A DNA stretch of 64,000 nt from Anthoceros angustus (Eukaryota > Plantae > Anthocerotophyta). The DNA is taken from contig MU008151.1 in the NCBI GenBank assembly GCA_010909165.1, positions 186,001 through 250,000 on the forward strand, given 5' to 3'. The translations under genes were made by a program, and so were the position numbers. Each line of letters begins with the position of its first letter. Positions within the stretch are counted from its first letter, which is position 1. Of this stretch, positions 2,176 through 47,391 are shown piece by piece. A model generated the notes under the pieces. It did not search any database. It saw only the letters and a list, made by a program, of their open reading frames with translations, and had not been told where the DNA came from.

Positions 2176-3330
2176 TTAGGGCTTGGCCTTGTCATCCTTT
2201 CCATAAGTCGGTGTGAACTGATTAGAGGATGGTGAATACCCTGAACCTGGGGTTGACGGTGAGTATCCGCCCGTAGTGGGGCTGCAATTTCCAACGCAAA
2301 CAAGAGTGAGAACTTTAAGTGATCTTCACAAACCACACAAAGAACTGCACCTTCAAACTGAACTATCCCTGAAAACTGTAAAACCCCAAGTCATACCTGT
2401 ACGGATGTTGCGCTGTCGGGCTATAACCAAGAGTGGATGGCGAGTACGAGGGACTGCACAAAAGAAAGGTTTTCAGTTTACTACTATCACGCAGAACATG
2501 TCTCAAAAGACGGACAGAAGCACAAAGTACAGTTCAAACTGATGGTTTGCAGACCTGGTAGGTGTCAGAGATGGAGCAGCCGGGCTGTAAGACGGGCTGG
2601 TGGGTGAGTAAGAGGGAGATGTTGGAGAATATGAAGGAGACGTCGGACTGCACACAGCAACGTAATATTAGGTTACTGGGACGAATCCACCGGTGATGAC
2701 CAACAACTTAACATTGCTGCTTGGAGATGAGTAAACAACTCATACCTGTAACTTGGTGAAGTGGGACTATACGCCGGGCTTGATGGTGAATATCTGGGAC
2801 TGCTTGGGGAGTAGACCGGGGAAGCAGGACTGTACCCAGGTGATGTTGGACTGTAACTTGGTGAGGTTGGACTGTAGCCAGGGGAAGTTGGACTGTAACT
2901 GTAGGCTGGAGAGGTCGGACTGTAGGTGGGCGACGTAGGACTATACGCTGGAGAGGTTGGGCTGTAACTCGGTGAGGTGGGACTATACGCAGGAGAACTT
3001 GGGCTATAACTTGGTGACGTGGGACTGTAACTCGGGGAGGTTGGGGAGTAAGACGGGCTTGTTGGAGAATAGGCTGGAGAAGTTGGACTGTACCTCGGGG
3101 ATGTAGGACTGTAAGACGGGGAAGTGGGACTGTAGGTGGGGGAAGTGGGACTGTACGAAGGAGAGGTGGGACTGTACGAAGGAGAGGTAGGGCTATAACC
3201 AGGAGATGTGGGACTGTAGCCTGGAGAAGTGGGACTGTAACCAGGAGAAGTAGGACTATACCCAGGGGAGGTTGGACTGTAGCCAGGGGAAGCTGGACTG
3301 TATCCAGGGCTTTGAGGGGAGAACTGCATG
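2176..3330 (-). repeat. RPB1 CTD heptad repeats (about 30 near-consensus plus about 5 degenerate), split by three introns
   Basis: Translation gives YSPTSP(S/G/A/T/R) arrays continuing through exons 11-13 and ending [13 protein letters not shown]. Confidence 0.9.
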
Positions 3331-6300
3331 CCAGAAACATAAGGTGAAAACTGAGCATCAGAGTGGGGTGAGGAGCGAATGCCGGGACTCAGCAGATAGC
3401 TTGGGGACATCGTAATATCATGGTGAGGTGTGCCAATCATTGGTGACCGCACAGGAGTCATGCTGAACTCCAGACCCTCTAGGTAGCTTGGCAGTTGCAA
3501 CTCAATGGCATGCTGCAACATGTTCTCCTTGAGCAGTAGACCAAAATCACCTGTCCCAATGGGTGCTAACTGCCCAAGCATGATATTTTCTGTCACGCCC
3601 CTGAGCTGGTCAGACTCCGCATAAACTGCAGCATCCAGCAGAATGTCCACTGTCTCCTCAAAAGAACATCGCATCATCGGACCTGTGTCATTGCGGTTGA
3701 TACCATGCCTTGTGATTGCCATAAGATGGCCACGGTAGGTCATGATGTCACACAATATAGCCAAATGCCGGTAGTTGACATAAGATCCATCAAAAGATAT
3801 GACGTCTCTAAGCTCTTTCAACAGAGCTTGCCGTACAGCCTCAATGCCGAGAACTTCAATCACCTCAATGAGATGATTGCTTGTGGTCCTGGTGGAATCA
3901 ACATCCTCATGACACATAACAGCTAACATGTTCACCCCCTCTGTATCCAGCATCCATTCCGTTTCTGGCTTGAATCCCTGAATTTCATCAAACTTGTTCT
4001 TTTTTGTCTCCCTAATGAAAACTTTCCTGATATCAGGGATGCCACGGAGAGCCATTTCTGTGAGCATGTTGCTTTCGATCTTCTTGAGGAAGACATCATC
4101 CTCACTTCGCTCTGGTGTTTCACCCTTAGGTGCTTCATCATTCATTATCCTGATTCGTAGAATCAGCTTTTCCGCATTGTCATCATTGAAGATACAGGCC
4201 AGATCGTCGTCAAACTCTATGTTGATCTTCTCTGCAATATCAGCCATGCTTAGTTTCTTGTCCACCATCATCTCCCTGTTTAATTGAACCCTAAGGAGCC
4301 ATGGCGATATCTTCTCAGGTGCCACATCCTCATCTGGCATTTCATAGTACGAGCGGACAAATTCAATGTCCTCATCAATTATGGTGCTCATTGGGTCTGG
4401 ATCATACCAGATCTCAGTGGCCTGTGTCACACTACGCAAGGTTGTGTACTCAAGAGCACACTGCACATTCTTAGCTTTCTCTTTTTCCTTATTTACTTCA
4501 GGCCTCAAATATACAGACAAAGAAGGAGTCTTGGTCTTCTTTGCAACATTTATAATCTCTCTCAACCTTGGCACTCCCAGGGTAACATTCTTTGCACTAA
4601 CACCAGCATAGTGAAAAGTATTCAGAGTCATTTGCGTCGCTGGCTCACCAATCGACTGAGCAGCAACACAACCAATCATCTCTCCGGGAGCAACCAGCGA
4701 CTGCAGAAAGCGCGCTTCTATCTCTCCAATAACCCACTCAAACGCTTCTTTAGTCAACCTCCACTCCTTCAACACTCGCTTGCTAGCTAACGTACTCCTT
4801 AGCAAGCAATTAAAAAACAAGGTGGAATTCTTCTGAGCCTCTGTACTGATTGCATCATCCCCTGAAACCACCTTCAACCGTTCTTGAAGCTTGTCAACAG
4901 CTTCCACAATTTCCATAGGATGCATATCTGATGGCTTTTTAAAATCCACCTTAAAAATCTTTTGGGCATTCCAAAGCAAACGCTTGAGATTCACAGGAAG
5001 TGGCCACATAGAATCCCCAGAAGGAGCAATCTCCAATCCAAGCTGTCTTCGGTCTGTCAACAGTTTTTGAACTTCAGCTTCAAAGACATTACGAAACTCT
5101 GGTATTGTCTTGATATCTTCTGCAGCCTCGGATGACATGTAGTCAGGGTTCCACGAGTCACTGTCCATCTCAAACTTGTAGACTCTGTCAAACTCTTTCA
5201 TCTTCATCTTCATAGAATCGAGCTTCTGAGATTCAATCCACACTGAATCCATACCATCTTCCCCATAAAGAAATTGTATGACATCACCCAGCGAATTCCT
5301 CACTGTTCCATCATACTTCACCATAACATCCTCCATGGCCTTTACTAGGCGCCTTTGGATGTATCCGGTCTCCGAAGTTTTCACTGCAGTGTCAATAAGA
5401 CCCTCCCTTCCTCCCATGGCATGGAAAAAGAATTCCTGGGGTGTCAGCCCTCTCAAGTAAGAATTCTCCACAAAACCACGACTCTCTGGACCGTAGTCAT
5501 CCTTTGTGAAATGTGGAAGGGTCCTGTCCACAAACCCATATGGTATCCGTTTCCCTTCCACATTTTGTTGCCCCACACAGGCAATCATTTGAGATATGTT
5601 AATGAAGGAACCCTTTGAACCTGCTGTCACCATAGCTTTGACGTTATTGCTCTCTGACAAGCTACGCTGAGCACTATTACCAGCTTCATCACGAGCCTTA
5701 TTGAGCACCTGCAGAAAAGCTTGTTCACTTAGTGCTGACGAACAATACAAAAGTGCAAAGAATAGAGACATTGTCTTGAAAGGATGCCAATTTCTCACCT
5801 GATTCACACGATTTTCAAAGGACTCCATCATTGAACGACCAGGCTGGGCTTCCAGCTGCTTTTCCTGTGCCTGCTTAATGAGCTCCTTCACTTCATTTTT
5901 GGCCTTTGCAATGGTCTCATTGATCTTCTCCATAGTGGAAGAATCTGCAATCGTATCTCCAATGCCAATGCTGAATCCTTGCTGCAATAGCCAGTAGTTT
6001 ACCAACCACTGTGTATGACCTAAAAACTTCCGAGCTGCATCTGGCCCCACTTCCTCCCTGATACGTGACAAAATGCGCACTTGATGACAGAGACTCAACC
6101 CGTGTACACATAAAACCAATGCAATAAGCAGGATAGGATTGAGAAGAGCGTCAAACTCACCAGATTACATGAATCAAACTTCCAGTGGATGTACCGAGGG
6201 TCTTCTTACAGAGAATGCCTGCCAAAAGCTCTCCCCTTTCAATTCGAACAATGGTGTCACCTACAGATATATCTCCAACCTCTGCGTCTGGATGCCACTG

Positions 6301-8788: not shown

Positions 8789-9301
8789 CTTCTTCGCCGC
8801 GTCGCGTTCCCGCGGCGGCGCCTAGCGGAAATGGACCGATCTGCCGCGCTCCTGTAATACTTAAACGTCACGTTTTCGTGTCACTGGAATACCGAGGCAA
8901 TTAATTAGGTTAAAACTTCACTCTTTCAGTTTATGTTTATTCGGTGCAAGAAGGGATATTAAACACCATCACATACATACATATATAGATGTCCCACACA
9001 TGATCGCCAAAGTATCATAGCCGTCCCCGAAAGAAGCCCCGGAATGTCATATGGATGGGATGTATGGTGGAGTATTGCACACGAGTACATGACATCCCAT
9101 CTCTATTGTACGTGACATCCCATCTCTAGCATAGAATAACGCGCCTCGTCTCCCCGTCTTTGCCATATACTTCCACAACGAGCTTGCTTGTTGCCGGAAT
9201 TGAACGCTGGGAGGGAGGAGCTGCTTCCGGAGGGAATTCTTTGCGCCGGAAGCTTTGTGCTGCGAATTGCGAGTGTGATCGATCCAGCAGGAAGCGAGAG
9301 C
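8789..9301. promoter_or_regulatory. Putative bidirectional promoter between RPB1 and the penta-EF-hand gene
   Basis: Divergent ATGs 513 bp apart; 21-bp tandem duplication GTAC(A/G)TGACATCCCATCTCTA at 9085-9105 and 9108-9128. Confidence 0.5.
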
Positions 9302-10395
9302 ATGTCGTCCGATCCAGGGCTGACGCACGGGGCGCCGCCCACGGCACCGCCACAGCCATGGCCATCGGCGGCGTCGGGGTACGGGCAGCCGGGAGGCTAT
9401 ACAGGAGCAGCTCCGCCGGGGGGCTACGGGGCGGCGGGATACGATCCTGCGGCGGTCTATGGAGGATACGGGTCACCGGCATCTACGGGGGCCTATGGAG
9501 CTCAGACGGGGCCTCCGCGGTACGGGCAGCAGCAAGGGGCGGGCTACGGGCCGCCTGCTGGAGCTCCTCCGGCTCCCAGCGGGTATGGCCAGCCGGGGAC
9601 GGCATCCTACACGCAGGCCTCGGCTCCGCCTTACGCGGCTCCGGGGCCGGGGTACGGCCAGGCTCCGCCTGCTCCGCCTCCGCAGTACCCCGCCGGTATG
9701 GCCAGCCGCAGCCGCAGCAGGGGTATGGCGCGCAGCTAGGGTATGGCGGGCAAGGTCAGGGGCAGGGGCAAGGGCAGGGACAGCAGCAGCAGCCGTGGCT
9801 CCAGCCGCAGCAGTCTTTCGGTTACGGGGGATACGGGCAGCAGCCGGGTTACGGGTACGGGGTGGCGGAGCTCTTTCCTCCGGGGACGGACCCCGAGGTG
9901 ATCCGGATGTTCCAGCAGGCGGATCGGGACGGCAGCGGGCAGGTGGACGATGTGGAGCTGCAGAAGGTGCTGTCGGCGGCGCATCCCTTCAGCTTGCGGA
10001 CGGTTCATTTGCTGATAAACTTCTTCTCGGCCACCTGCTCGCTCAAGATCAAGCCTGTGGAGTTCGCTAATTTGTGGAAGAGCTTGAGGGACTGGAGAAA
10101 GATCTTTGACGAGCACGACCTGGACCGGAGCGGCAGGATGGATGTGAAGGAGCTCGGGAAAGCGCTGCTAAGCATGGGGTGTGCCGTGTCCGCGCCTTTG
10201 TTGAAGGTTCTTGTCACCAGATACGACCGGACCGGGCTTGCTAAGTCTATCGACTATGACAATTTTGTGGAGTGTTCCCTTGTTGTCAAGGGCCTGACTG
10301 ATAAGTTTAAGGAGAAGGATGTTCGGTTTCAGGGATCGGCGACTCTCACGTACGAGGAGTTCATGCTCATGGTGTTGCCGTTTGTGACAGCTTGA
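9302..10395 (+). CDS. Penta-EF-hand calcium-binding protein (peflin/ALG-2; plant CML49/50-like) with Gly/Pro/Tyr/Gln-rich N-terminus; apparent 1-nt frameshift near 9695
   Basis: EF loops DRDGSGQVDDVEL and DLDRSGRMDVKEL, FPPGTDPEV motif and C-terminal GSATLTYEEFMLMVLPF. The N-terminal GYGQP repeats run in one frame to 9694 and continue in the next (GCC GG TAT GGC, one G short). Confidence 0.88.
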
Positions 10396-15046: not shown

Positions 15047-15524
15047 AAATGTGGCGCGACTTTCGATGGATGTACGCGCACAATCCGTGTCGTTGTGGTA
15101 TGGAGTCCGTTCCCAAGAGAATGATAGCTCTTTCAGCTTGATTCTCACCTTTCTACGGGTCCACTTCACCTTAACACACTCAATCTTCGTTACACCCAGC
15201 TATTTATAACGTTCAAACAGCCCGTGGCCAAACGCGTTTAAGACCCGTTTGCGTTTCGTCCTGCGTCACCGTTTCTCTCACCGTTCCTCTCATCGCCTCT
15301 CTACACTTATCAACCTTGGAAAGAACGCAAGTGGCTACATGGGTGACCTCCTCGTTTGTTCACGCCTCTCCGTCCGGCTCACACACCCTCCCGTACCTCC
15401 GGCTCACACGTTCGGTCCGCTCGGCGTTGGACCGCCGCTCTCGAACAAGGGTCCTCGTCGTCCTTCCTCGCACACACCACCACACGTTAAGTCCGTCACG
15501 GGACCTTGATCGATCTCCCGAGTC

Positions 15525-19238: not shown

Positions 19239-19542
19239 ACAGAGTATATAGAGATAACCATAGAGTATGTAGAGGTGACCACAAGTCACATGCTTATCCA
19301 CAAGAGGTAAACACAAGTCATATGTTTATCCACAAAAGTTATAGCGATCTATCAGGGTTAGCCATCTATAATTGTTATGCCTAACCATAAGAGTTATGAC
19401 TATCTACTAGAGTTATGGCTATCCACAAGAGTTATAACAAGCTTAGGTGGTAAGAGCTTTTAGAGCCCAGATTAGCCACGCCAGCTTTGTTTTGTTAGCA
19501 CACCTCAAAGGTGTACAGCCATCTACAATTGTTATGCCTAAC

Positions 19543-19755
19543 AAACGGCTTAGGCCAAATGGACACACATTTATAAGAACGCCGTGATTAAGCATCCTGA
19601 GCCTAGATCGGTACTTAGATGGGGCGCCTAAAGGGAGTGGATGCCCTTGGTGCAAGTAGCTTAGGCACACCATGGTACAAGTTGTCAAGTACCAAGTCCC
19701 ATGACGGAAATCCGTCCTTAGTGGACTCAAATAAAATTCTTCTTCATTCTTCTTC
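19543..19755 (+). mobile_element. 5S-rRNA-derived SINE with LINE-like 3' end and (TTC)n tail
   Basis: Nearly the same ~210 bp as 43278-43485. Inserted into the second copy of a ~160-bp tandem repeat with short duplication CTAAC. Carries a 5S internal-promoter-like head and an AATAAA + (TTC)n tail. Confidence 0.8.
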
Positions 19756-20113
19756 TAACCATAAGAGTTATGACTACCTACAAGAGTTATGGCTATCCAC
19801 AAGAGTTATAACAAGCTTAGGTGGTAAGAGCTGTTAGAGCCCAGGTTAGCCACGCCAGCTTTGTTTTGTTAGCACACCTCAAAGGTGTACAGATACGCAC
19901 ACTATGTACTTGGTTCTAAATGTACACTGTAATATCATCACACTATGTACTTGGTTCTAAATGTACACTCTAATATCATCGAACATATATACATATAATA
20001 AATATACACTCCAAATATGTACATACATACATGGACACCAGTCCCAAGGGCCAAGCTGCTATGCTAAGCAGCTTCTTGCATTTGATTTGATTTCAACCCC
20101 TTGCAGCCATGAT

Positions 20114-28344: not shown

Positions 28345-29720
28345 GTGATCATTATTTTCCTGTTTCGAAACTCCTATATAATATTTTCTTTAAAATCCCA
28401 GGCAGAGAGGTCTCCTTCTAGTTGTTGCAGACTGGGATGGTTGTTTTTCAACCTGGTTCTGCCCCTGGCCAGCAGGGGGTTCACCTGGTTGTGCACATTT
28501 CCAGCAGGGGGGCTCAGATACTTGTGTTGCAAGGTTGATTGTTGATCATTTTGGAAATGGTTCTGCCCATGGCCGGCAATGGGCTTAATTGTGCGAGGCT
28601 GATAAAAGCAGCAATTGGCTAGCTGTATTCGACGGGCGCGGGATGGGTGCAAAGTGAGATAGATGTGATCTATGGCAATGTTCCAAGATTTACCGGTGGG
28701 GATCACGAGACATGAGATTTTTCAGAACTTCACGTGTTTATGTAGAGCTTGAAGTTCTGCTAATAGGTGGAATTGCCTTCTAAGTATGGCCTGGGTAAGA
28801 AGAGTGACCACTTGAGAGCTAAGGGGCACAACTTCTCTTGTGGGAGTTTCATGTTAACTGCAATCTTACATTTTGTGGTTCCGACATTGCTTTGGGGAGT
28901 GGGTTCTACTCGGAGCACTAGTTGGTTAGCATTGCTGATGTTGGCACCAAACACGTTTCGGAATCATGAATGGGCTTGGGCTGGCCATGCACAGCCTGAT
29001 GGCCTGTGCCACTGGGGTGTGGAACGAAATCCATTCCAAGCCTTCATCTGCAGCCTTAAGGGTGTCTACTTGGCCAATCCCATCTATTTTAGGTTAGGTT
29101 GGTTTTTTCTGCACCGTGGTAGCTGGAAATTCCTCACAGGCTCGGCTGCTTGTTTCCTGCTGGATAGGGTTTTGAGGATGCCATGGATTTAAAGGATTGG
29201 TCTGTGCCCGACTTGTTGTGAAATTCATCGTGGTACCATAGGAACTCTCAGGTCAGGTCTTCCCCTTCCATTTTTGCAAATGACCGTTCATGAACATAAG
29301 AAGCCATGGCATGAATTCGGGTTTATTAGCTTTCAGCAGTTTCCTAAGGCTGGGTCTGTGCAGGCACCATTTCGTCGAATGATGGCTGGGAATGGATATC
29401 TTCTGCATCACCACAATCAAATCAGATTGAATTGAATTAGCTGCCCAGCATGGCAGGCTGGTACCAGTGTCATGTACATACGCACATAGGTAAGGTTGTT
29501 CGAGTGTCAATCATTCACTAGTAGTACAAATCTCTATTTGTGGCATCAAAGTCTGGCAAGTCTGGGCTCAGGTACGGCATACGAGATAGCTAAACTCACA
29601 AGTCCTCTTGACTGATGAGAAGAGAGCTGTCCCTACTACAGTTATAACTCCTTACAATTTTGGACTTAAGCCTGCAAACAATCTTGGTTCTTCTCAAAAC
29701 CCTCATGAAGTGCAGTTGTT
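28345..29720 (+). pseudogene. Mosaic of PPR-like fragment, sulfiredoxin genomic fragment (29055-29390) and a block shared with 48860-49250
   Basis: Colinear similarity to 49570-50470 and 48860-49250; SRX exon/intron sequence such as GGGTGTCTAC, CGTGGTACCATAGGAACTCTCAGG and TGCAGGCACCATTTCGTCGA. Confidence 0.65.
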
Positions 29721-33075: not shown

Positions 33076-35023
33076 GCGGACAACCTGTACAAGCTTTACA
33101 AAGGTGGTCTTACAAGAAGAGCACAGGCAGAACCAGACCGTGTTTGGATATAGCCAGAGGCAAAAACCTTACAGGCAGAGCCTGTAGGGAGACAAAGAAC
33201 AAGCAACCCCCATCCAGCACCCACAAAAGTGAAGATCCTAAGGCAACTGGTGCTGAACGGGGCACAATTATTCCAGCTGTTCCAACCAGGGGTCCATGGG
33301 GGTTTCACGATGCCATCAATTGGAAGCTCATGGAAACCTTGGACTTGGTCTATATTCCAAATTACGTGACTTTTAAAATATATTAATATATAATTTATAT
33401 TTATATTTTTTTCTAGGGCAAAACACGCTTTTTTTTATATAACGCACACTAGACGCACCCACACTAGGCCTCCAAGTAGCCCGCCATCCTCCTATACCAA
33501 TTCCCAGCTGCTCATTAGGGACGTTGGACCATCTACCCATATACGAGGTTAGCCCTTGTAGTATTTAACTCTTTCCAACTCTCATTAAAGTTTCCTTCCA
33601 ACCTCATCAAACCTTCTCCACAAGAGTTTAGGAAGATTATTTGTAGACCGCTACTCTCACCCAAATATAGAGTGGGTTTTAAGTTTTTTTCTTCCCTACT
33701 ACCGTACCCCAAGGGGTGATTCGGCGTTAATTAATTAAAATTAGTAAAAGTTGAAAATCCAGAAATTATTATAGTTAAAATGTTGAATAGGTAAAAATTT
33801 ATGAGTTTATGATGCCGAAAATAAGGAAACTAGGGTTTGTGGAAAATTAGGGCCTATTTAGGGAGATCTATACATATCCATTAGTTTTATATATACCTAT
33901 ATATTTTAATAAATTTTGAAATTTGATAAAATTATTTTTTGTAAATGTTGAAATTTTGAAAAATATAAATATTTATGTTGAACCTTGTTTTTTTCAAAAA
34001 ATAATTATTTCGGCATTATCCTGTTGAACCACCCTTCGAGGTACGGTATGTACCTAACTTTCCCAAGCTAGGTTTTCTTAAGCTCTAAATAAACCTTAAT
34101 AACCACTATCTCAACTTATCAATTTTATTTCAGGATAATTTTGGGCTCCGTTTTACCTTCTTTATATGACTTCTTCCATAATTATTAATAGATATATTGA
34201 TAATTAATTCATTGAAGAGGACTACCATATTAGAAGTTTTTTGTTTGAAACACATTCATATTAACATCCTATATTGTAATTTGAAAATCTATTCTCCATA
34301 TGGCTTCTAACTTATTTAAAATATTCAAAAATATTTTATGGACGATGATTACATTAACAGCTTTCTTTCTTGGCCATTGTTCAGATTAGTTGTATTATAA
34401 CCTGCCTAGAGAGGGAATGTTACAACCATCAAGTGGTAGTCATCAAGAGGACCTCCTAGAGATATGTGGCTTGCAAACAATCCAAGTATTCTAATTTTCC
34501 AATTGGGGCGAGCTTCTGAGATACAAAAGGGTTAGCCTAAAAGCTTATGCTTTACATTGGGGATTGTGGAGATCTAGCTAGAAGAGCTAAGTTCTCATTG
34601 AGTCTAAGTGCCCTAGCCAAAGGGGCGTAATGGCTGGACTCTAATATGTACTTTGTGAATAAAGAGCAGCCTTTAGGAGGTCTTTTATGAGTCATTTGTG
34701 CGCGCTGGACTGCTGGGGGCCTAGAATTGTGTCGTGAGAAATAAAACGTTGTGAGATTTTTGTGCACATCTTGGAGCAGGAGTGAATTGGCGCGATCCAA
34801 GGCTGTTGGTTGTCCGGCACTTGCTACATATATCTTGGCTCCATAGTGAGAGGTGCTCCTAGGAGAACTATAAAATGAGATTTTGTCAAAAGTATTAGAT
34901 GGTTTTTTAAAGATACACATGCAGCGACATGATTTTGTGCATGCAAGACCAATGTACCATTAGGTCTCACACAGGAAAAGTTTGCGTGCTACGAAACGAG
35001 GAGCCTTCTTTCAAATCGTTATA

Positions 35024-36131
35024 ATGAAGTTTATATTATTTTGCATAGTATTATGTTGTTTAAGTTTGACAACAGAAGGGATTGGAATAAATTGGGGAAT
35101 GACTTCATCTCAACGCTTAGACCCATCATTTGCGGTTCAGTTAATTAAAAGATATGGCTTTGATCAAGTGAAATTTTTTTCACCAAATGCTGCAGCCTTG
35201 GATGCGCTAGCTTCATCTTCAGAAATCGGAGTGATGCTAGGAACTGAAAATTCTGATATAATTGCGTTTTCTCAAAGTGTCCATAATGCGACGAAATGGA
35301 TTCAAAAGAATGTAAAGCCATATAAACACCGTGGTACAAATATCATGTAAGGAGAAATTCATTGTAAACGTGAAGGTTTTGTATGAATTTCTTTTGTGGA
35401 ACACTAATTCAATCTTTTATTGCAGGTATATTGGTCTTGGGAACGAACCTCTTGCTACTTTCTGGAATCAAAATTTTGCTCCTATGTTACTCCCAGCCTT
35501 ACAAAATTTATATCAAGCTTTGAAGAAAGAAAATATGGCTGATACCATAAGGCTTACAATCCCTTTCAATTATGATGTTGTTTCAAGTTCGAGTATTCCA
35601 TCACAATCAACATTTCGTAGTGATCTATCATATGTTATGAAAGATATTGTAGCATTTTTAGATAAAATTGGAGGGGTATTTTCAATAAATGTATATCCTT
35701 TCTATGCTCTCGATAGTAATGATCAGATTCCTCTAGCATATGCTTTTGAATGCAACAAATTAACACAAATGCCATATCCTAGTTTATTTCAAGCATCATA
35801 TGACAGTGTAGTAGCAGCTTTAATGGATGTAGGTTATGGTAATATGCAAATCATAGTTGGAGAAACAGGATGGCCAACAAAAGGTGAGAAAAATGCAAAT
35901 TTACGTAAGGCGCATGCTTACAACCAACGGCTTATTGACTTTGCACAGAGTGGAAGGGGAACCCCAATGAGACAAAATGAAACATTGAACATATTTTTAT
36001 TTTCACTAGTTGATGAAGATCAGAAAATTTCATCCTCATTTGAACCGTATTGGGGGATAGCAGATATTCATGGGCATCCAAAATATAATTTATCTATAAC
36101 ACAAAAATATTCAAAACATATATGTGTATAG
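35024..36131 (+). CDS. GH17 glucan endo-1,3-beta-glucosidase with signal peptide; exons 35024-35346 and 35426-36131; degenerate X8-like remnant possibly to ~36480
   Basis: GIGINWG, YIGLGNEP (acid/base), FSINVYPFY, IIVGETGWPTKG (nucleophile), IFLFSLVDEDQK; GT-AG intron in frame. Confidence 0.88.
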
Positions 36132-36805
36132 TTGATACTGAACCATCCTACTGATTGCCGCAAAGATTTGTTATCTTCAATACAATATAGAAGGCTATAC
36201 TTTTGGGCAAAAATAAAGTTATTTTACTAAAATATTTAATATTTATTAGTTTATTAAAAAAACTAATATATTTTTTTGTCGAAAGTTTGTGTATAGATGT
36301 ATCCCTCGGCACTTGAGTGTACGAGTCCAACACCGAGTCAAGCGCGTCGCACTCGGGTTTGCAAGTTACACACCGCTTTGCTATCGATTGGATCTTAACA
36401 ATGCTTTTTCCATTGCATCACTTTTTTCCCGGTGGAACAAAAGCTATTGGCTTACTATTTCAAACTTACAGAGTGTGTAATTGGAGTAAAATAATTTTTT
36501 TTTTGTAAACTCTGTAAAAACTAATTTATTGTTAAAATTACACCTTTTCTAAAAATAAAATACTAAGTGAAGGGGCACTCAAACTGCAGCACCCTATCTA
36601 TGGTAGTCAATTTCGAGATAGAGACACTTAAGTATAGTGGTAAACAAGTTCAACTTATTGTAGATGTAATTTATATATTTCACAGTATTTTTTCAATTAG
36701 ATTGATGTTGAATTCTTAATTTCTAGAAAGTTTAAAATTTGAATTCTCAATTCGCTGGAAGACAAACAAACAAATTTATTTGAAGTGCACTAACGATGAA
36801 CATGC

Positions 36806-37446
36806 TGCCATGGCACTTGGTTCTCAGGGCAACTTGCTCAATGAAGTCAACTAGGCTAATAGCACTAGAGGCATTGCTCTCTAAGTACCCCATCCAGGTC
36901 TAAGTCATTGGTCTCTAGGTATGGTAGGTAACTACCCCATCCATGTCTGAGTCATGGGTCTCTAGGTACTCTAGGTACCCCTTCGCCATGGCACTTGGTT
37001 CTCCGCACAATTTGCTCCATGGAGTCAACTAGGCTACTAGCACCTGAGGCATTGCTCGAGGTACCTCATCCGTGTCCAAGGCATTGGTCTCTAGGTACCC
37101 AATTTGGGTCCGAGGCATTACTCTAAGTACCCCATCTTGGCCCCGAGGCATTGGTCTCAGGTACCCCATCCGGGTTGAGGCATTGCTTTAGGTACCCCAT
37201 CCAAGTCTGAGTCATTTCTCTCTAAGTGCTCTAGGTACCCCATCTAGGTCCGAGGCATTGGTCTTTAGGTACCTCATCTGGGTCCGAGGTATTGCTCTCT
37301 ATGTAGCCCATCCACGTCCGAGGCATTGGTCTCTAGGTACTCTATCCGAGTCCGAGTCTGAGGCATTGCTGTCTACGTACCCCATCCAGGTCCCCTTTGT
37401 TGTGTAGAGACGTTCTTAAGATGTGTGTGTCCATTTGGCTTAAGCC
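36806..37446 (-). mobile_element. Relative of the 5S-derived SINE whose C-box segment is expanded into a minisatellite
   Basis: Head TGGCTTAAGCCAAATGGACACACACATCTTAAGAACG matches the SINE head, followed by many GGATGGGGTACCTAGAGACCAATGCCTC-like units and ACCAAGTGCCATGGC (compare SINE ACCAAGTCCCATGAC). Confidence 0.6.
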
Positions 37447-37717
37447 ATTTGGAGGTCAAAGAGATCTACTCAACGATATATCTATTTTACTTATACATAA
37501 AGATGGGTTCACCTATCTAATTTTAATTTTATCATGTTACATGCGAATTAGCGTTGTTGTGGGTTTCTCATTCTCCACCGCTGTATAATCACAATTGGGT
37601 AAAACGACAACGATATTCTAGCATCGAAATGGTGTTCTAATATCGAAGTGGGTGTAAAACAACCACATGCCTGACAGATTCGAACTCTCGCAGACCAACC
37701 CATGTAGTTAAGTAAGC

Positions 37718-40440
37718 ACAACAACAACTTTATTTATGTCCACTAAACCTTTAACACCCCTTAACCAACAACAACAAAAACTTTATTTATGTCCACTAAG
37801 GATGGAAGAACCATCATGGGACAGAGATAGTACAGCGTAAAAGAGGTTTAAAAACCGAGTACACTTACGCACGTCGAACTAGAGAAGCAGACTGTATGAG
37901 GGAAGCGTAAAAGAAGGCAAAGACTACAAGGAGTCCAACAAGGACCGCCAAGATCAAGAAGCTCAGAGAGACATAGTCCAGAGCCTAGGAATGTGGAAAG
38001 AAAAAATCATGAGCGAGAAGCCGCACATTCAAAAGAAGAGAGTAACGAGACCGAATATCGCATAGGCGTGACAATAAAAGAGGAAGTGTGATTGATTCGT
38101 GGATCCAAGGAGCAAAGCTTGCATCCTATCGCCTTGGGAGGGGTAGGCTTGAGCCAACTCGGTCTCAATCCGGAGGTGGTGGGAGCTAACACGAAATTGA
38201 CCTATGAGTGTGCGGAGTTTGAAGGAAAGGGGGAACTAAGGAAGGTGGTAGGAAATTTACGAGGGAGGATTAACTGAGCCTGCCTTTGTAAAAGCGGAGT
38301 CTAGAAGTGAGAGGGGAAAAGGAAAGAGGGGACCAGTGAGGCGAAGGTATCTTAATTTAAGGGCCCCGAATGGAGTGGTTGGGGGATGTGAGAAAGGGGA
38401 GTTGGGAGGAGGGAGAGGCCAAGCAGGAGTCGAAAAGGTTCAAACTCGAATCTTCTAAGCCTGGCAGCTTGAGAAAGCCAAAGAAAAGAAGCTTGTGGGT
38501 CAAGATTGAGCCAGAGCGAGCGGAGGACCTAAAGGCAAGGAGGAGGTAAGGGGATCCAAAATGGGATTAGCAATATCAAGGAGGTGGAGGCGGTAAAGAA
38601 AGGATGAGAGACGAAAAAGGCCATCAAGTTCGAGGGGAAAGGCTGCAAATTCAGAAAGGAGGATGGGTAATGGAGTCAAACGCTTACAAGCAATGTGAGT
38701 GCGGAGAAAGGAAGATTGAACCTTTCCACCTTTGCCCAAGAAGAAGGGGAAAGATCCGGGCCCCAAATTTCAGCGCCATACAAGGCGGAGGGAATTACCA
38801 TAGTGTTGAACACCGCTCAAGATTGATATCCTCAAGATTCATCCTCAGATAAAAGAACGCAGCACGTATGAGCCCATCCCCTTGGTAGCGGGAGGAGGCG
38901 AGGAGGTCCAGTTAAATTTAGGACCAAAATAGTGATACCAGATAAGTATAGGATCGAACCATCTCCACCTCCCGACCATCATAATAAAATTTGCAATCAC
39001 CCTTGTAATCCCGAGTGTTGAACCGCATAATCTTGGTCTTGCAGATTGACAAAGAGACCCTTGGTTTTACAAAAAGGGATAAAACATCCATTGCTTTTCT
39101 CCGGAATGAGATAAAAGAACAATATCATCCGTGATATAGGAGGATAGGAATACTTTAAATAGCCGAGCACCGTGGTCGCCAGATCAAGAAGCCATTCCTC
39201 AAGCTCATCAATATACAACCCAAAGAGATTTGGGGACAAAGGGTCGCGAACGCCAAGTTGGATAGGGATCCGTGGGAAGACAAACCACGGGAGTCTTGAT
39301 TCGAGCAAAGACCCTTGTAGAGAAGGGTAGCAAGATGCCACAAATGAGGAGGCATCTTAAGAGATTGAAGTCTCACAAAACAACTTATCCCAAGGCACAG
39401 AGTTGAAAGCACGCTTAAAGTCAACAAAACAACAGTAGACGTGCTTCTTCAGATGTCGAGCCCCCTCAACAATAGCCCGGAGGGTAAAAAGATGATCCAA
39501 AGTATTCCGACCGGGGCGGAAACCGGCTTGGCCCCGAGCACGCACCTTAGCCTCCTCAGCCCAGGACGTAGTCAAGATCTCCAAACAAGAGCTAAAGATC
39601 TTAGCATAGATAGACTCCACGGTGATAAATCGGTAATTAGAAGGGAGATAAGGGTCGCCAGCCTTGAGAATGGAGTGGATATCATTCTCACACCAAGGAT
39701 CAGGGAAACCGAAAGACAAAGCATCATTAAATGAGAGGCAAGATGCGAGGAGAAGGAGGTAGAGTCAAGAACCGGAATAAATCCCTGTGGATACCATTAG
39801 GGCCGAGTCGCATCACCGAGCTTGACAGCACGGGCAACTAGATTGGCGTGAAAACCCGAGACCGTGATCGAGGAATCGAGGCAAGGAGGCGGAGGGATGT
39901 GGTAAAGACTATGAACATAGGAGAGGAGTTCAGAGTGGCTTTGAGAAGAATGGGTGAGCGGTGGAATTCCTTCCAAAAGGCGAGCCACCGGGACGCTCAA
40001 GAGAGATAAGACGGTGTGTGTTCTTGGATGAATTGGGACTTTTTCATGGAGATGAAGGCTTTGTAAGGCTTGATGCTGGCTTTGTAAAGAGCGGAATGAT
40101 GGGATCCGGGAGGAGATTAAGTTGGCGCAAAGTGAGATGTAATTGAGAGCGCATGCGCTACAATCCGCATCAAACCGTGGATGGCGGGGGTTGGTTTGCA
40201 CGGGAGGATGGCAAAATTTGAAAGGAAAAGTGGAGCGGGCAGAGGTGAGAACAGCAGAGGCGGAAGTGGCAGCGACAAGAAAAGGGAGGGTGGGGAATGG
40301 AAGCAAGGGAATGGAACCACTCGGCCAAAGCTTCTACTTGCAAAAAAAGAGGTGAATCGTAAAGATGTAACGCCGATAACCATTGAGGAGCTCCACGGTG
40401 GGCTACCAAGTCCGTCCTCGAGGAGCTCCCACTGTGGGCT
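37718..40440 (-). mobile_element. 5'-truncated, frameshifted non-LTR retrotransposon (RT plus C-terminal CCHC finger; RTE/RTEX- or L2/CR1-like) with (GTT)n tail
   Basis: RT motifs QAGFRPGRNTLDHLFTL, VYCCFVDFKRAFNSV and PLSPNLFGLYIDEL; C-terminal CKLCSL...H.LFYC remnant at ~38060-38130; tail AAATAAAGTT(T)nGTTGTTG. Confidence 0.85.
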
Positions 40441-40818
40441 ACCAAGTCAGCCCTCGGGAAAGCAAACATGTTGGTTTCCACGAGCCCGCGGGATTCGCAC
40501 CAGAGCGCAGCGATGGTGGGATTCGCAGCAATCGCGACAGACACGGGCACTAAACTCACGTGCACCTCCGGATGCTTGATTTCCGGAAAATGCCCAAGAA
40601 TCAGCGAGGTCAGCCTGGCTTGCCATCGGTTCCCGCGCTGTAGCAGCAGAAACCTGGCCGGCCGTGGACCAGCCTTGCACCAACCTTGCGGCCTACTGTA
40701 TATGATGCCAGTGTCCACCTCCACACCTCCATTCCACTGCACTGCTCCTCTCTTCCCACAGCCTTCCTTCCAGCACCAACCTCGCAGCTCCCTGAGGTCG
40801 ACGCGGAGCCCATCCGAC

Positions 40819-42140
40819 ATGGAGCGGCCCGCATCGTCCCGCTCCCATTCCCGCCGCCCGCCATCCCCATCTCCATCGCCTCTGCTCCTCCTGCTCCCTC
40901 TTCTCCTTCTGGCGCTCGCCGGCCTGGCCAAGTCGGCGGCTCAACCGGTGGAGGGGGTCTCGCTCAACGCCTGGGCCGACGCCGACCAGGTCCATGTGTC
41001 GCAGGTGGACCCGGATCTGGGCACCGTCTGGCCGCACGGGAGGGTGGAGCAAACGCAGCCGACCCTGACGTCGTGGGGTCGCTGGGGTGACGGTGAAGGT
41101 GATCACGAAGGCGGGTGGGCGTGGCAGCAAGTGGTTTGCCCGGCTCCCGTTCTGCCGGGGCCGGGTGTGGGTCGCGCTGAAGCCGAGCAGCAAGACGGAT
41201 CCCGCATCCTGCCCCGCCGGCGCTGTGGAAACGACCTCGTCGTGCGGGTTCACGGCATGCACCAAGCTCGCCCCGGGTGGCACGGCAAGCGGCTCGCGGA
41301 GCAGAGACGGGCGTACGACGAGGTCCTGGTCGACTCGGTGGGCGTTTTCAGCCATGGCAGCTTTCCTGCGCGACATCATCACGGGCATCATCACCCCACC
41401 GGAAGCACGCCCCGCGCCCACGCCTGCTCACTCTCCAGCTCCATCGCCCATGCATCATCACCACAAGGCGCCTGCTCCATCGCCAGTCCATCACCACAAG
41501 ACGCCGGCTCCGTCGCCTGTGCATCACCACAAGGCGCCGCCCATCGCCGGCTCACCACCACAAGGCGCCCACGCCGGCTCCGTCGCCAGCAGCCCATCAG
41601 CACAAGGCGCCGGCTCCGTCGCCAGCCCATCACCGCAAGGCGCCGGCTGCATCGCCAGCCCATCACCACAAGGCGCCGGCTCCATCGCCAGTCCATCACC
41701 ACCAAGTTCCGGCTCCAGCTCCTGCGCATGGTCACGGTCATGGGCACCATGCTCCGTCGCCTCGTAGTCACCATTACTCCAGATCGTTGCAATTGTCGGA
41801 GGTGTCGCGGCCCAGCAACTGGCATCATCCTTATTCCGAAGCTCCTGAGCATGGCGAGCATCCTCATGAGCATCTCGAGCACCCGCATCAGCCGGGGCAT
41901 CCTCATCCCACGGCGGGCCAGCCAAGGCTCCAGTGCCCCGCACCACGGCGACAACAGCTGCAACACCAAGTGGACGGTGGAGGCAACGTCATCGAGGTGA
42001 TGGACTACTCCAAGGAGGAACCCATGAAAGACTCCGCTTGGGAGGACAAGCCGGGCTGCAAGTTGGTTTCCAAGAACGAGGGAAATTGGCTTCTGGTATG
42101 TGTGAAATGTGCAGACGTGCCCTCCGGTAGCTACCCGTAG
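40819..42140 (+). CDS. Secreted His/Pro-rich protein (PAPSPxHHHK repeats) with Cys-containing N- and C-terminal domains; several frameshifts in this copy
   Basis: Hydrophobic signal LLLLLPLLLLALAGLAKSAA; GC3-rich frame VTVKVITKAGG...CGFTACTKLAPG; about 8 His/Pro repeats; C-terminus CNTKWTVE..NVIEVMDY..KPGCKLV..WLLVCVKCAD. Frameshift positions differ between the two arms. Confidence 0.65.
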
Positions 42141-42534
42141 GTGGCGAAGGCTATCGACAGCGGGGACGAGTCTGTCGAGTATGCTCTTCTTCCGTGAACT
42201 TGATGTCGATCCTAGTACCTACTGTTGATCGATAGGATCGGTTGTGGCCGTGCTGGATTATGAGCTTGCATCTTGCAAGCGACTGGCTTGATTGGAAGTT
42301 GAATTAAGAGAAGTGGATCCTGTGTCTCAAGATTGTCTGCTACCAGTCCCAACACGCGTTTAATGCCTACGCAACATTACATCTGGAGATAGGGTTTAGG
42401 GTTTGTTTGTTGGAAAGTGGACAGACAGGGCGACTTGCACCTCTTGAGATAGGGCTTAGGGTTTAATGTAGATGGCATGCAAGCCGCTGCCGTGAAATTG
42501 CTGTATGAGGAAGAAATGTTACTAACCGATGAAT

Positions 42535-43277
42535 AGCAATCCATTCCAAGCCTTCATCCACTTGGTCGATTCCATCTTCTTTAAGGTTAGGTTGCGGCTG
42601 CAAAGTGGCAGCTGGAGATCCCTTACAGGCTCCGGGTTTGTCTCCTGCTGGACAGAGGTTCAGGTTCAGAGCCCAGCAGCAAGTCGGTCACCTGCCCTGC
42701 CGGATCCGTGCAGACCAATTCGTGGTGCGGATTCACGACCTGCACCCAGCTCGCCCCTGGGTGGCGCGGCAAGCGGCTTGCGGAGAAGAAACAGCCATAT
42801 TCGCCAGGCAAGGGCAGGGGCCCGCACAAGGCTGGCTCCATCGCCTCGCCCGCCGTGGCCAGCGCCCAATTAAGGCTCCGACTCCAGCCCCAGGTATCGC
42901 TGCCCAGCAGTTGGCGTCATCCTTATTCGGAAGCGGTAGCTCGTGAGCATGCCGAACATCCTCAATACGAGCATCCTGAGCATCCCGAAAATCTGCACCC
43001 TTGGTATCCTCATCCCCAGGGCGGCTCAGGTAAGGACCCAGTGACCCAGCACCATGGCGATGAGATCTGCAAGTCCAAGTGGGCCGTGCAGGGGAACGTC
43101 GAAATCCAAGTCATGGACTACTCCTTTGTTGAAGGAGAAACCCGTGGAGGACAAGTCAGACTGTAAGTGGGTTCCCAACAAAGAGGATAATTCGCTTCTG
43201 GTTTGTGTGAAATGTGCAGACGAGCCCTCCAGTGGCTACCCGTCCGAGGTGAAGACTGCCGAGAGCGGCGACCAGCC
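42535..43277 (+). pseudogene. Chimera: sulfiredoxin fragment fused to a diverged, repeat-less paralog of the His/Pro-rich gene, interrupted at its 3' end by the SINE
   Basis: 42575-42660 is SRX intron-like; from ~42675 the sequence matches 41185 onward (CAGCAGCAAG...CGFTTCTQLAPGW) and the C-terminal CKSKWAVQGNVEIQVMDYS...LLVCVKCAD. Confidence 0.6.
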
Positions 43278-43485
43278 TGGCTTAGGCCAAATGGACACAC
43301 ATTTATAAGAACGCCGTGATTAAGCATCCTGAGCTCAGATGGGTACTTAGATGGGGTGCCTAAAGGGAGTGGATGCCCTTGGTGCAAGTAGCTTAGGCAC
43401 ACCATGGTACAAGTGGCTTAAGTACCAAGTCCCATGACGGAAATCCTTCCTTAGTGGACTGAAATAAAATTCTTCTTCTTCTTCT
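43278..43485 (+). mobile_element. 5S-rRNA-derived SINE (second copy)
   Basis: 43305-43368 aligns ungapped to plant 5S rRNA nt ~37-100 (41/64 identities by hand against a recalled 5S sequence); (TTC)n tail; short CTG duplication; the paralog at ~42160-42190 shows the empty site. Confidence 0.8.
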
Positions 43486-43949
43486 GTTGAGAATCCTCTT
43501 CTGCCGTCTTCATGATGTGGACTCGCAGTAGTTTACATCGACTGAGCTAAGAAGAGAAAAGAATAAGCTAAGGATATGATCCGTTTTGGCTTGTGCAACT
43601 TGCAAGCGCTTTGCTTCATTGCGATTAGAATGAAGAGCGTTGGCTCAGTCCTTATACATTTGTTAGAACTAAATAAGTAATGGTTTTGGAATTCAAGGCC
43701 TTAATCCCACGATTTCAATAAATCCTTTGGCTGTTGGCTGTTAACCTACTTGATCTTTGACCTTCAGTTTATATTTAAATATATAAGCTTTGGCTTTCTG
43801 CTTTCTATCTCTTGGATTTCTGAACGTGGGCTTTAGTCTTGTACCTCTTGACTTTCTTAATAATACATTCTCAGGATATTCTCGGTTTCATGAGAAGCTC
43901 TTCATAGAGCTTTCGATCATCAGCAGAACAACCTGAATTGCGGCAAGAG

Positions 43950-44530
43950 TTTTAATCTTGTAAGCTGCACGAGCTCTTAGCTTTGATGTAAGTCCGATAA
44001 AGCCTCTTGTATCCGAATGTCGAATGCGAGGATGCGCATACCTTGAATTTCAATAGGTTCAATCAAGAGGTGGATTCAGCTAAACCAGGAGCGGAGCAAG
44101 AGCAAGATATAGGATGGGTCTTTTCAGGGTAACAATATTTTGTGAGCTGCTGAATAGTCCGTGGATGGGCAAACAGGCGTGGCGATCCAGTGGCTACTAA
44201 ACATACAGCTGACTTGTGTATTTATGGCACGACAAGTTCAAGCTGTCACTGAATGTGAGTTCTTCCTAAACACTCACCATGCGCGTTTTTTCCATCGCGA
44301 TGTTGGTTCCAATCACGTTGGAGGTTATGAAGGAATGGGTGTTGAGCAATTTCTTGGAGGTTTGCATCACAAAAGTTACTGAACCCTGTAACTGTTTGGG
44401 TAACATTCAGATTACTTCTGCTACTGGTGCCAAGTGTATATGAAGGCGTCACATACCAACTGAAAGACAAGGGTTCAGACGTGCATAGTTTCTCCCTGAA
44501 GTCAGGTATGCGCATATCAAAGGACCAATG
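43950..44530 (+). pseudogene. Diverged fragment of the gene at 21900-22650
   Basis: Shared blocks such as TGAAAGA(T/C)AAGGGTTCA.ACGTGC.TAGTTT.TCCCTGAA...GGTATGCGCATATCAAAGGACC, with a ~130-bp deletion. Confidence 0.75.
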
Positions 44531-44870
44531 GAAAGGAGAAAAAGTTCCTCTCGTTCCTCGTCCCGGTTGCAAAGCAAAGCTGAGCTGTAGGCGGTTGTAG
44601 TGTTTCATCCAATCCGTTCAAATTCCTGCCGCTGAGTGAACTTCAAACCCGACAGTCGATCTGGGTAACTTGCCGGATATTTTGTGGAATTTGGAGCTCG
44701 AAAACCAGCGACAGTACAAGAATATGGGAAGCCGAACGGGATGCACCGAATTGAATGGGCCACGGAATACCTTTGTTACTCCAAGGTTCAAGATTGCAGT
44801 GAAGAAATCTGCTGTAACCCGGAGACTTCATCGAGAGCTGCCTGTACAGGCCGAATGGAGGCACGTCGAC

Positions 44871-46349
44871 ATGGCCGAGACAAGCAGCGATGAGATGATC
44901 CTGGCAGTAGAGAGCGCTGGGGAGGAGCTGGAGGACAGATCCACCTCGAAACAAACCCGATTGGAAACATAGCGATAGCGACTCAGATGGAGCGGGAAGC
45001 GTGTACACAAGCGGATCCGACTCCGATTCGCGCTCGAGCGAGAACGTGCTTGTGGAGCAGCCGTGGTGCTTCATGCTGGTGCAGCCCGGCATGGCCGACC
45101 GGTGGAAGGTGATGGCTCCCGGGAGGCCACGCGGCTGTGGCTTCACGACCCGAGAATCCCAATCCGCTGTGGTACTGGGTGCCCGTGGACAGGGTGGAGT
45201 CTGCCATCCGCCGGATCCAGCCGCTCACCCCGGCCTCCTACATGGTGGGGCTCTACCGCCGCGCGGCCCGGCTCATGTCCAGTTACCTGGTGGGCGATCC
45301 CAGCCACCCGACGACCTGGAAGGAGATCCAGTGCCAACCTGAGCTGCAGTCGCCCAACTCCCAGGAGCACGTGTTCGCGCACTTGCTCACCCTGCCCAGT
45401 TTCCTGGACTTCCGCATTCTGGAGTTCGGGGCTGTGGAGAATCCGCGCACCGGGGCTGTGACCATCAGGGTTGCAACGCACATCACCAGCGTGGAGAAGT
45501 GGGTGCCGGGATCGGAGATGACCACAGCCGGCAGGAGAATCGAAGGCCCCGGCCCATCCAGTGCGCCGGCGGTCAGAAACGTGGGCCAATTCATCTCCAG
45601 CTGCGTGAAGGGGAGGATGGTGTACATCGCCATCGTCACCCCGCCGTCGGGGCAGCAGCAGGGGTTGGTGCAGGTGTGGATGTACAGCTGGGAGGAGAAG
45701 GCGTTCGCGGAGTACATCGAGGCGATGGGATGGCAGAACGACCCGAAGCTGGGGAAGGCGGTGTGGAGACGTTCCAGCTACTGTTCGACTACAACACCGA
45801 GATGCTGATGATCTGGGCCGGATGGACGGAGGACGAGTTGTATACCAGGGCGGTGGACAGGAATGCGAAGTGGATGGTGAGAAGATTCGGAGGCTGAAGT
45901 TGGACAATATCGCCGGGAAGTGGTGCTGGAACGGGAGGAGGAGGGTTCCAAGATCAAGGACGCGGGCTTCTACTTCAGCCAGCCGTGCTATGCGTCGGGA
46001 TCGGGGCGGGACGTACAGATATTCCCGACCTGGAATAGGGATTATGTGAGTAGCAGGAAGAGTAACCACGGGGAACTGGGGTTCGACGATTCGGATGGAT
46101 CCTGGCAACTGCCCTATCCTCCCGACGTGTACTTGTCCACTCTGAGGAGGGAGGAAGCTGGAGAGTGCGTGTGCATTGGGAGTTTCTGGCCCAAGTCGGG
46201 AGACATTGGTAAAATTCACAGGCTGCAGGAGGTTATCCCGCTTTGGTATAAACGTCGGAGACGATAGATCTGGAAGACGAGGACACGGAACGGCAAAGGG
46301 AACGAGGGAAGATGAAAGAACTAGCGAATGGGTAGTGGGCGGTGTGTAG
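44871..46349 (+). CDS. Paralog of the 29826-31610 beta-propeller-like gene, frameshifted in this arm
   Basis: MAETSSDEMI..., QPWCFMLVQPGMADRWKVM, FRILEFGAVENPRTGAVTIRVAT and CVKGRMVYIAIV are shared; it lacks the 11-aa repeats. The mirror copy is in frame where this copy is not. Confidence 0.7.
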
Positions 46350-46760
46350 CGAGAAGGACGAGTAATTGTGGGCAGTATTATCACCTCCGTTGGTCGTAAT
46401 CTTTGAGCGATTTGATTTCACAGAGCCAAACCGCCCTGGAAGTTTGCAGGATGAGGAGGAGGAGGATAGCATCACCTATGTTACAATTTGGGTGGTCTCT
46501 TTCACAGGCCTGGGCAGCACGGTAGGCGTGCAGTACTCGAAGAATGATTGCACTGATGATGACGCAACCTTGGCCAATGTTAGCGGCGTGTCTGGGCATC
46601 ACAATCATCCTAACTGTCCTTGGATCGCATTAGGTGAATAAGAAGAAGCACAAACCCGCGTTTTCCTAGTGCTTCCAGTTCCACCAGCTTCCCTTCCCAA
46701 GTCCCAACATTGCTGCAATTCCAGCTTCCAGATTCCAGAGCTGACAGCTCACCTGAAAGC

Positions 46761-47391
46761 ATGGCCACTTTAAAGCATGTGTGGGCAGGAGCTTCCGTCC
46801 TCGCCACGCTAGCGACATGCGTGCTGGCTGGTAGCGGCGATGCCGCCTTCCTTAGTCGGTCCCATCAACGGCGACACCTTCACGGCGAAGCCTTTCAGCC
46901 TCGTTCTAGAATTCTAGTATCACCTCACCCCCCCTTCCGAGGAGGAGGTGGTGCCGCCGGTCGATCCGAACACATTGTTCGGCGAAATCGACATGTACGA
47001 CGTGCACCTCACCACCACGTCGGATCCCAACTCCCCCGAGATCGCATGCGGCTATGCTACCTCTTCTTCGATGAACCTTTGGAGTGCTCGGGCTACGAGA
47101 ATAAGGTGACAAGGGTTTTCAACGACAACAGCGGCTTCCCAGCCAACAGCAGCATCAACGTGGAGGGATTTGGGCCTTACGACATCCCGCCGGCAGGTTA
47201 CAGCTACACCGTGGTGGGAGGAACCGGCGCTTTCGCCGGTGCTTAGAGGAGTCTTTACCGACATAGTGTTCTCCTTCAACGCCACTGCAGAAATGCTCCA
47301 GAATGCAAGCATTGTACAAGCTCGAATTTTTTGTGCCGGCCTTCCCTGCTGCAGCCAAGGTGAACATTGGCAAATAATGTCAGTGATATAG
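46761..47391 (+). CDS. Dirigent-like secreted protein (frameshifted)
   Basis: Signal-like N-terminus; LFGEIDMYDVHLTTTSDPNSPEIA and SINVEG...YTVVGGTGAFAGA(RG) resemble dirigent motifs. Confidence 0.65.

Follow-up and report, generated by a model that had tools for sequence, protein, structure and literature searches.

SINEs whose head derives from 5S rRNA, termed SINE3, have been found in fish, mammals, reptiles and insects. In plants, all described SINEs are, to our knowledge, derived from tRNA; one of these, the tobacco TS family, has a LINE-type tail and a (TTG)n end. We also know of no 5S promoter in plant mobile DNA other than the one located within Cassandra LTRs.

Cassandra TRIMs carry their 5S promoters in the LTRs and occur in monocots, dicots and ferns (PMC10853983). 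According to a 2024 review, plants have no known SINE of 5S origin (PMC10946416). The lepidopteran SINE3 families and Ajax TRIMs described by Kojima retain only the box A-IE-box C part of 5S and are divergent upstream of it, and the insertion of a SINE3 into an LTR has been proposed as one origin of Cassandra (PMC10886601). Our search of the published literature on SINEs of Anthoceros and other hornworts, which also took in the AnnoSINE papers, found no prior description of the element reported below.

The element described here is located in a 64,000-nucleotide stretch of the genome of the hornwort Anthoceros angustus (contig MU008151.1, positions 186,001 to 250,000), which is referred to below as the window. 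The coordinates of the element copies, of their parts and of the related sequences are given in Table 1.

Table 1. The SINE copies, their parts and related sequences, in coordinates of the window.
Feature	Position	Strand	Description
SINE copy 1	19543-19755	+	~213 bp, ~10 nt short at the 5' end compared with fuller family members
SINE copy 2	43278-43485	+	Found by head pattern, blastn and nhmmer
SINE mirror of copy 2	54486-54687	-	Second arm of the fold-back duplication
5S-ICR-like segment, copy 1	19572-19636	+	Ungapped against plant 5S nt 36-100
5S-like segment, copy 2	43304-43368	+	nhmmer 14.5 bits, E 1e-3
5S-like segment, mirror copy	54661-54599	-	nhmmer 13.3 bits, E 2.4e-3
Empty-site paralogue, copy 1	19360-19516		First unit of a 157-bp tandem duplication; junction 19385/19386
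Left TSD TAAC, copy 1	19539-19542		Right TSD at 19756-19759; from comparison with the empty unit
Empty-site paralogue, copy 2	42074-42217		~78%; junction 42174/42175, ..GTCTG/TCGAG..
LINE-derived 3' stem-loop, then AAATAAAA	19695-19736	+	Fold, alignment, HMM
Microsatellite tail (TTC)3-A-(TTC)3	19737-19755	+	Sequence of copy 1
LINE remnant 3' end: same stem-loop, then AAATAAAG and (TTG)n	37778-37822	-	Fold, HMM
RT fragment, first (N-terminal) half of RVT_1	ORF 39357-39719	-	Pfam, E 2.4e-10
Longer SINE relative, ~690 bp	36762-37453	-	Mirrored at 61127-61790 (+)

A 56-nt pattern of the element head has three matches in the 64-kb window, where none is expected by chance. According to blastn, copy 2 is 95.2% identical to copy 1 over 208 nt and the minus-strand copy is 94.8% identical to copy 2. 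The element is 208-213 bp long and non-coding, and the flanks of copies 1 and 2 are mutually unrelated when compared by blastn within the window. The minus-strand copy belongs to the second arm of a fold-back duplication and does not count as a separate insertion, which leaves two independent copies.

The arms of the fold-back duplication (34501-48843 and 64000-49170, with the centre at ~49.0-49.2 kb) are 93.5-98.4% identical, and one segment of it (48976-49400 versus 55458-55884) is displaced. The arms are separated mostly by small indels of one to a few bases, with 141, 259 and 87 gap positions versus 26, 68 and 9 mismatches. This pattern points to an artefact, of assembly or of a folded-back long read, more than to an old palindrome of biological origin.

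Several other features of the window can be mentioned. An uninterrupted ORF of 1148 amino acids at 2673-6119 (-) codes for domains 3-7 and the CTD of the RNA polymerase II largest subunit (Pfam E values down to 5e-107), the CTD heptads corresponding to a 21-bp tandem repeat at 2856-3351; an intron-free exon of such length is notable for a plant RPB1. Ordinary host genes near the insertions are represented by an EF-hand calcium-binding protein ORF at 9160-10395 (+) and by an ORF for a glycosyl hydrolase of family 17 (beta-1,3-glucanase-like) at 35331-36131 (+). ARAGORN also reports a 94-nt tRNA-Pro(TGG) at 28519-28612 (+), which exceeds the length of a standard tRNA and may therefore be intron-containing, or else a false or aberrant prediction.

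Both independent insertions can be compared with an empty site. Copy 1 interrupts the second unit (19517-19542 continued at 19756-19892) of a tandem duplication whose two units are 97% identical; the blastn pairs, both at 97%, are 19382-19518 with 19756-19892 and 19360-19385 with 19517-19542. The empty unit reads ..CCTAAC/CATAAG.. at 19380-19391, and the occupied one reads ..CCTAAC, the element, TAACCATAAG.. at the corresponding place. As TAAC is present on both sides of the element and only once in the empty unit, the target-site duplication (TSD) of copy 1 is 4 bp long; inclusion of the final C of the tail makes it 5 bp (CTAAC). For copy 2, both flanks were joined and then locally aligned to the window. 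The resulting alignment spans the insertion point without a break, and the TSD is very short, TG or CTG. The target sequence of copy 2 (41810-42217 and 42900-43640) is a GC-rich, diverged (~75-78%) local duplicate. No Pfam match was found for the ORFs of this region, which is probably part of an older repeat.

The two-tier stem-loop formed by the last ~45 nt of the SINE is also present at the 3' end of a LINE remnant in the window. The LINE end reads GTCCCATGATGG..CCATCCTTAGTGGAC.TAAATAAAG followed by (TTG)n, and the SINE end reads GTCCCATGACGG..CCGTCCTTAGTGGAC.CAAATAAAA followed by (TTC)n. The predicted folding energies are -12.7 kcal/mol for the SINE (z -2.9) and -11.4 kcal/mol for the LINE (z -2.1), and the inner stems (GACGG/CCGTC versus GATGG/CCATC) differ by one compensatory change, from C-G to U-A. 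The LINE end is also matched by a profile HMM of the two SINE copies, with an E value of 8.8e-5. The reverse transcriptase fragment lies ~1.5 kb upstream of this end on the same strand, the remaining LINE being decayed, and its protein-atlas matches are generic eukaryotic RT-fragment clusters. Since the LINE has a (TTG)n tail and the SINE a (TTC)n tail, the LINE of the window is a relative of the partner LINE and not the partner itself. In copy 2 the AAATAAAA motif is followed by (TTC)5 in place of the (TTC)3-A-(TTC)3 of copy 1.

A stretch resembling the 3' half of a tRNA (..GAGTTCGAATCTGTCAGGC..), with a good box B and a following TGTTTT, is located at 37655-37705 (-), between the LINE tail and the longer relative of the SINE. 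This stretch may be what is left of a tRNA-derived SINE, or else a tRNA pseudogene.

The abundance of the family was assessed by mapping contigs of four public runs from three organisms to positions 19300-20000 at 80% likeness. The mapped data are contigs throughout; none of the runs is on record as RNA, and one of them, X2, is guessed to be RNA. The number of matching contigs was 2601 for X1, 134 for X2, 538 for X4 and 1034 for X6, and practically all of the matches are confined to the element (19542/19547-19745), the flanks of which are single-copy (~11x) and covered in the source organism only. Past 19745, the loose ends of the contigs contain more TTC repeats and then diverge. A separate search with the exact degenerate pattern of the family gave no match in the genome-contig and viral-contig collections.

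The loose ends at the other side of the element, 5' of 19542 and 19547, read ..(A)TGTGTGTC-CAAAY ahead of GGCTTAGG, contributing ..ATGTGTGTCCAAAY upstream of GGCTTAGG. This extension indicates that full-length members of the family are ~10-14 nt longer at the 5' end than the copies in the window. It is the reverse complement of the internal GGACACACAT, so full-length members can be expected to have a 5' hairpin. The start points differ (AAAC, T and TCCAAAT) among the two copies and the longer relative, which is the pattern expected of 5' truncation during LINE-type retroposition.

Overall, the element is a SINE, that is, a mobile non-autonomous non-LTR retroposon. It is short, non-coding and dispersed, being present in thousands of contigs with unrelated flanks; a target-site duplication and an empty site are found for both independent copies; and its 3' end is shared with a LINE and followed by a simple-repeat tail. 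The original prediction of two independent insertions plus one mirror copy agrees with the head pattern count, with the identities and with the arms of the fold-back, and the short TSD and empty site that it ascribed to each insertion can now be given as TAAC and (C)TG, with both empty paralogues located. The predicted tail, an AATAAA-type motif with (TTC)n, is indeed present and is variable in length between copies 1 and 2. Its view of the element as a SINE and not a fragment of a Cassandra-like LTR is borne out by the microsatellite tail, by the LINE end and by the lack of a paired copy nearby.

Turning to the head, the Rfam 5S model spans all domains of life, and authentic plant 5S genes were therefore gathered for comparison. 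They were retrieved from metagenome contigs by a 20-nt pattern taken from 5S nt 1-20, outside the tested region, which gave 30 loci; the tandem 5S genes of these loci were verified by Rfam at 80-116 bits, and 39 distinct sequences were extracted. A profile HMM of the 39 genes was then applied blind to both strands of the entire window, with the filters off. The three SINE copies were the top three matches in the window, copy 1 being the best (17.0 bits, E 1.8e-4), and the fourth-best match had an E value of 0.24. Each of them has a gap-free alignment to 5S nt 36-100, a region that covers box A, the intermediate element (IE) and box C. Copies 1 and 2 were each subjected to 20,000 dinucleotide shuffles, none of which reached the real score (maximum 9.2 bits for copy 1 and 10.6 bits for copy 2), and none of 100 block-shuffled windows reached 13.3 bits (maximum 11.1).

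Compared with one of these authentic plant 5S genes, L017:190-308:-, copy 1 is identical at 42/65 positions and copy 2 at 41/65. The blocks retained in the head are AGAAC.CCG, TTAAGC, GTACT and GATGGG; the family consensus, judged by the contigs, apparently has GATCGG where copy 2 has GATGGG. The limits of the three control elements were placed on plant 5S by Xenopus numbering. By these limits the identity is 9/15 in box A, 3-4/6 in the IE and 10/18 in box C; outside the boxes it is 10/14 for nt 36-49 and 5/7 for nt 73-79. Similarity to box A, IE and box C is thus present in the order and with the spacing of 5S. Plant 5S genes are known to have the same three control elements (PMC11070557).

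Smith-Waterman local alignment with +1/-1 scoring gave z scores of 9.3 and 7.7 against plant 5S, whereas the scores were at chance level against the universal Rfam 5S consensus (z 1.4) and there was nothing against E. coli 5S. This difference indicates that the likeness is specific to plant 5S. Elsewhere in the window, the 14 nt at positions 15339-15352 (+) are identical to the box C core of plant 5S (ATGGGTGACCTCCT), a match that is not significant when taken alone (nhmmer E 2.8).

Covariance models gave a different result. Neither RF00001 nor any other Rfam family was found when the whole window was scanned with Rfam 15 at the gathering score. At E<=10, RF00001 was absent from the 401 nt around copy 1 and from 143 nt of copy 2, where the matches were only noise from snoRNA and sRNA models at 13-16 bits. 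The SINE copies were also not among the matches of a plant-only 5S covariance model run with the filters off; this model was built from 22 plant 5S genes, and its RNAalifold structure is not fully canonical in helices I-III. The head is thus matched by the HMM and not by the covariance models, suggesting that the primary sequence of the control region has survived and the 5S fold has not. Recognition by a 5S covariance model, which the element does not show, is not defining for all SINE3 families, as some of them retain the promoter part alone. 5S nt 1-35 and ~101-119 have no convincing counterpart in the element.

The head is likely to descend from a plant 5S gene, namely from its internal control region (ICR). 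The gap-free alignment to this region, counted by hand as 41/64 in the earlier reading of the sequence, was recovered as 42/65 and 41/65 with all four blocks present. The check suggested there, an Infernal search of the head with RF00001, failed to give a significant covariance-model match even at E<=10. What stands of the proposed plant SINE3 is the SINE itself and a head matching plant 5S nt 36-100; the 5S fold and the 5' 35 nt of 5S do not.

The position of the 5S-like segment relative to the 5' end of the element is relevant for the promoter question. With 5S nt 36 at 19572, 5S nt 1 would fall at 19537. The true start of the family would be at ~19533-19534, within ~4 nt of the start of a type-1 promoter, if the low-agreement consensus of the loose ends is followed. 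A type-1 start is expected ~50 nt upstream of box A, and the 5' end placed in this way would fit. Runs of four T are absent from the element, and Pol III would therefore not stop within it.

A tRNA-derived (SINE2) head was considered as well. No tRNA was found at the copies, either by ARAGORN or by Rfam at E<=10, and the best candidate for a type-2 box B in the element has three mismatches and lacks the TTC core; with the box A/box B scans also negative, this type of head was rejected.

Variation among the mapped contigs is unevenly distributed. Across the three organisms, no variant of at least 10% is listed in TTAAGCATCC (19588-19597), with the exception of T>C at 19589 in X2, and none is listed in GATGGGG (19618-19624). 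The listed variants concentrate at 19580-19587, which includes two CpGs, and at 19598-19606. This contig-based pattern fits discrete boxes and is suggestive of them. The head may plausibly act as a TFIIIA-dependent Pol III promoter.

The longer relative complicates this picture. It has the first ~36 nt of the head in common with the SINE (GGCTTAAGCCAAATGGACACACA..TTAAGAACG), which are followed by 9.1 tandem 34-nt units, each with a box-C-like GGATGGGGTACCT that agrees with the box C core of plant 5S, GGATGGGTGACCT, at 11 of 13 positions. The GTACTTAGATGGGGTGCC part of the SINE resembles one and a half of these units, and TTAAGC is absent from the longer relative. Its 3' part consists of a related stem and an internally duplicated region and ends in AAATAAA(TTTG)n. 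As the box-C-like motif is contained in a 34-nt unit able to amplify in tandem, it has an independent life. Either a box-C piece was amplified in a derivative of the SINE, or the motif is a repeat module that merely resembles box C. The gap-free colinearity of 65 nt with 5S favours the former. The structure of the longer relative also suggests that the head module of the SINE can seed minisatellites.

This ambiguity is the main reason for giving a sizeable share to the view that the element is a genuine SINE whose 5S likeness is not its promoter, having arisen by chance or convergence or being a dead relic. Transcription would then depend on the 5' hairpin region, on a cryptic type-2 promoter or on read-through from host genes. 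The failure of both covariance models, Rfam and plant-only, is in line with this view, as is an identity of only 64%, falling to 55-60% inside the boxes. What the longer relative has in common with the head lies upstream of the 5S-like blocks, the relative does without TTAAGC, and listed variant sites are more numerous in the 5S-like segment than elsewhere in the element. However, the three copies are the best HMM matches in the window, with no shuffle coming near, and the 65-nt match is gap-free, correctly oriented and at the correct distance from the presumed 5' end. The absence of matches to tRNA or other Rfam families and the poor box B candidate also speak against it. We therefore hold this view to be unlikely, though with an appreciable chance of being right.

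Two further explanations concern the nature of the copies themselves. As Cassandra LTRs bear 5S-derived promoters and are widespread in plants, the copies could be thought of as solo LTRs or fragments of a Cassandra-like TRIM, but each insertion consists of one unit only, its AAATAAA is followed by a variable microsatellite, its 3' end is common with a LINE, its 5' truncation is variable, its duplications are 2-5 bp instead of a fixed 5 bp, and no second direct copy, PBS or PPT is present nearby. A Cassandra-type TRIM is contradicted by these properties and is very improbable. Segmental or assembly duplication without mobility would account for the third copy, which is merely a product of the fold-back with arms differing mainly by indels; it is contradicted by the unrelated flanks and the empty sites of copies 1 and 2 and by the thousands of contigs with diverging flanks in three organisms, and can hardly be credited as an origin of the element.

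The reading that we prefer, and hold to be probable, is that of a non-autonomous SINE composed of four modules. The first is the 5' end with a hairpin in full-length copies; the second would be a 65-nt descendant of the plant 5S ICR (nt 36-100) with box A, IE and box C at their original spacing; the third is a body of ~60 nt; the fourth would be a ~45-nt stem-loop with AAATAAA taken from a LINE 3' end and followed by (TTC)n. Presumably, TFIIIA would bind the 5S-like boxes and TFIIIC, TFIIIB and Pol III would be recruited, transcription starting ~50 nt upstream of box A, that is, at the first bases of the element. As the element is devoid of a T4 terminator, the transcript would traverse the whole of it. 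A related LINE could then supply the reverse transcriptase, which would recognise the 3' stem-loop and tail and copy the RNA into a nicked target, thereby producing the 2-5 bp duplications.

Among the described systems, the element is closest to the animal SINE3 families (zebrafish SINE3, HaSE3, other lepidopteran SINE3, bat MEG and Ped-1). Like them, it is a short non-coding retroposon in which box A, IE and box C of 5S follow one another in the 5S order and at the 5S spacing, and it has a tail of LINE origin that is closed by a simple repeat. With the lepidopteran SINE3 it also shares conservation of the promoter region only, the upstream part being unrelated to 5S (PMC10886601). It differs from the animal families in that its host is a land plant and its match is closest to plant 5S, in that its head opens with a hairpin of its own instead of 5S nt 1-35, and in being too diverged for the Rfam 5S model. 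The closest match being to plant 5S and not significant against the universal consensus argues for a birth separate from that of the animal SINE3.

The Cassandra TRIMs of plants and the Ajax TRIMs of nemerteans resemble the element in having captured the 5S internal promoter, and Ajax, like the element, has only the promoter part of 5S. However, these TRIMs have paired LTRs, PBS, PPT and 5-bp duplications, whereas the element consists of one unit, in which a LINE-type 3' end is followed by a microsatellite. The tRNA-derived plant SINEs are similar to it in size, copy number, LINE-related 3' end and the use of a trinucleotide-repeat tail instead of poly(A), but the element has neither tRNA similarity nor a box B. 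It would be a SINE3-type element in a plant. That it is the first such element in land plants, born independently in a bryophyte lineage, driven by a TFIIIA-dependent 5S promoter and recently active, is a proposition for which we see the chances as evenly balanced.

Since the Rfam 5S model is blind to this family, Rfam-based classifiers of SINE heads would miss it. If our interpretation is true, the family would be a living example of the element that was postulated as the donor of the Cassandra 5S module and never seen in plants, and this idea of the origin of Cassandra would become testable. With a high-copy 5S-type SINE in a land plant of an early-diverging group, the capture of a type-1 Pol III promoter by SINEs would then not be confined to animals and fungi. 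The family would also provide a natural series of diverged 5S control regions, suitable for asking what plant TFIIIA requires.
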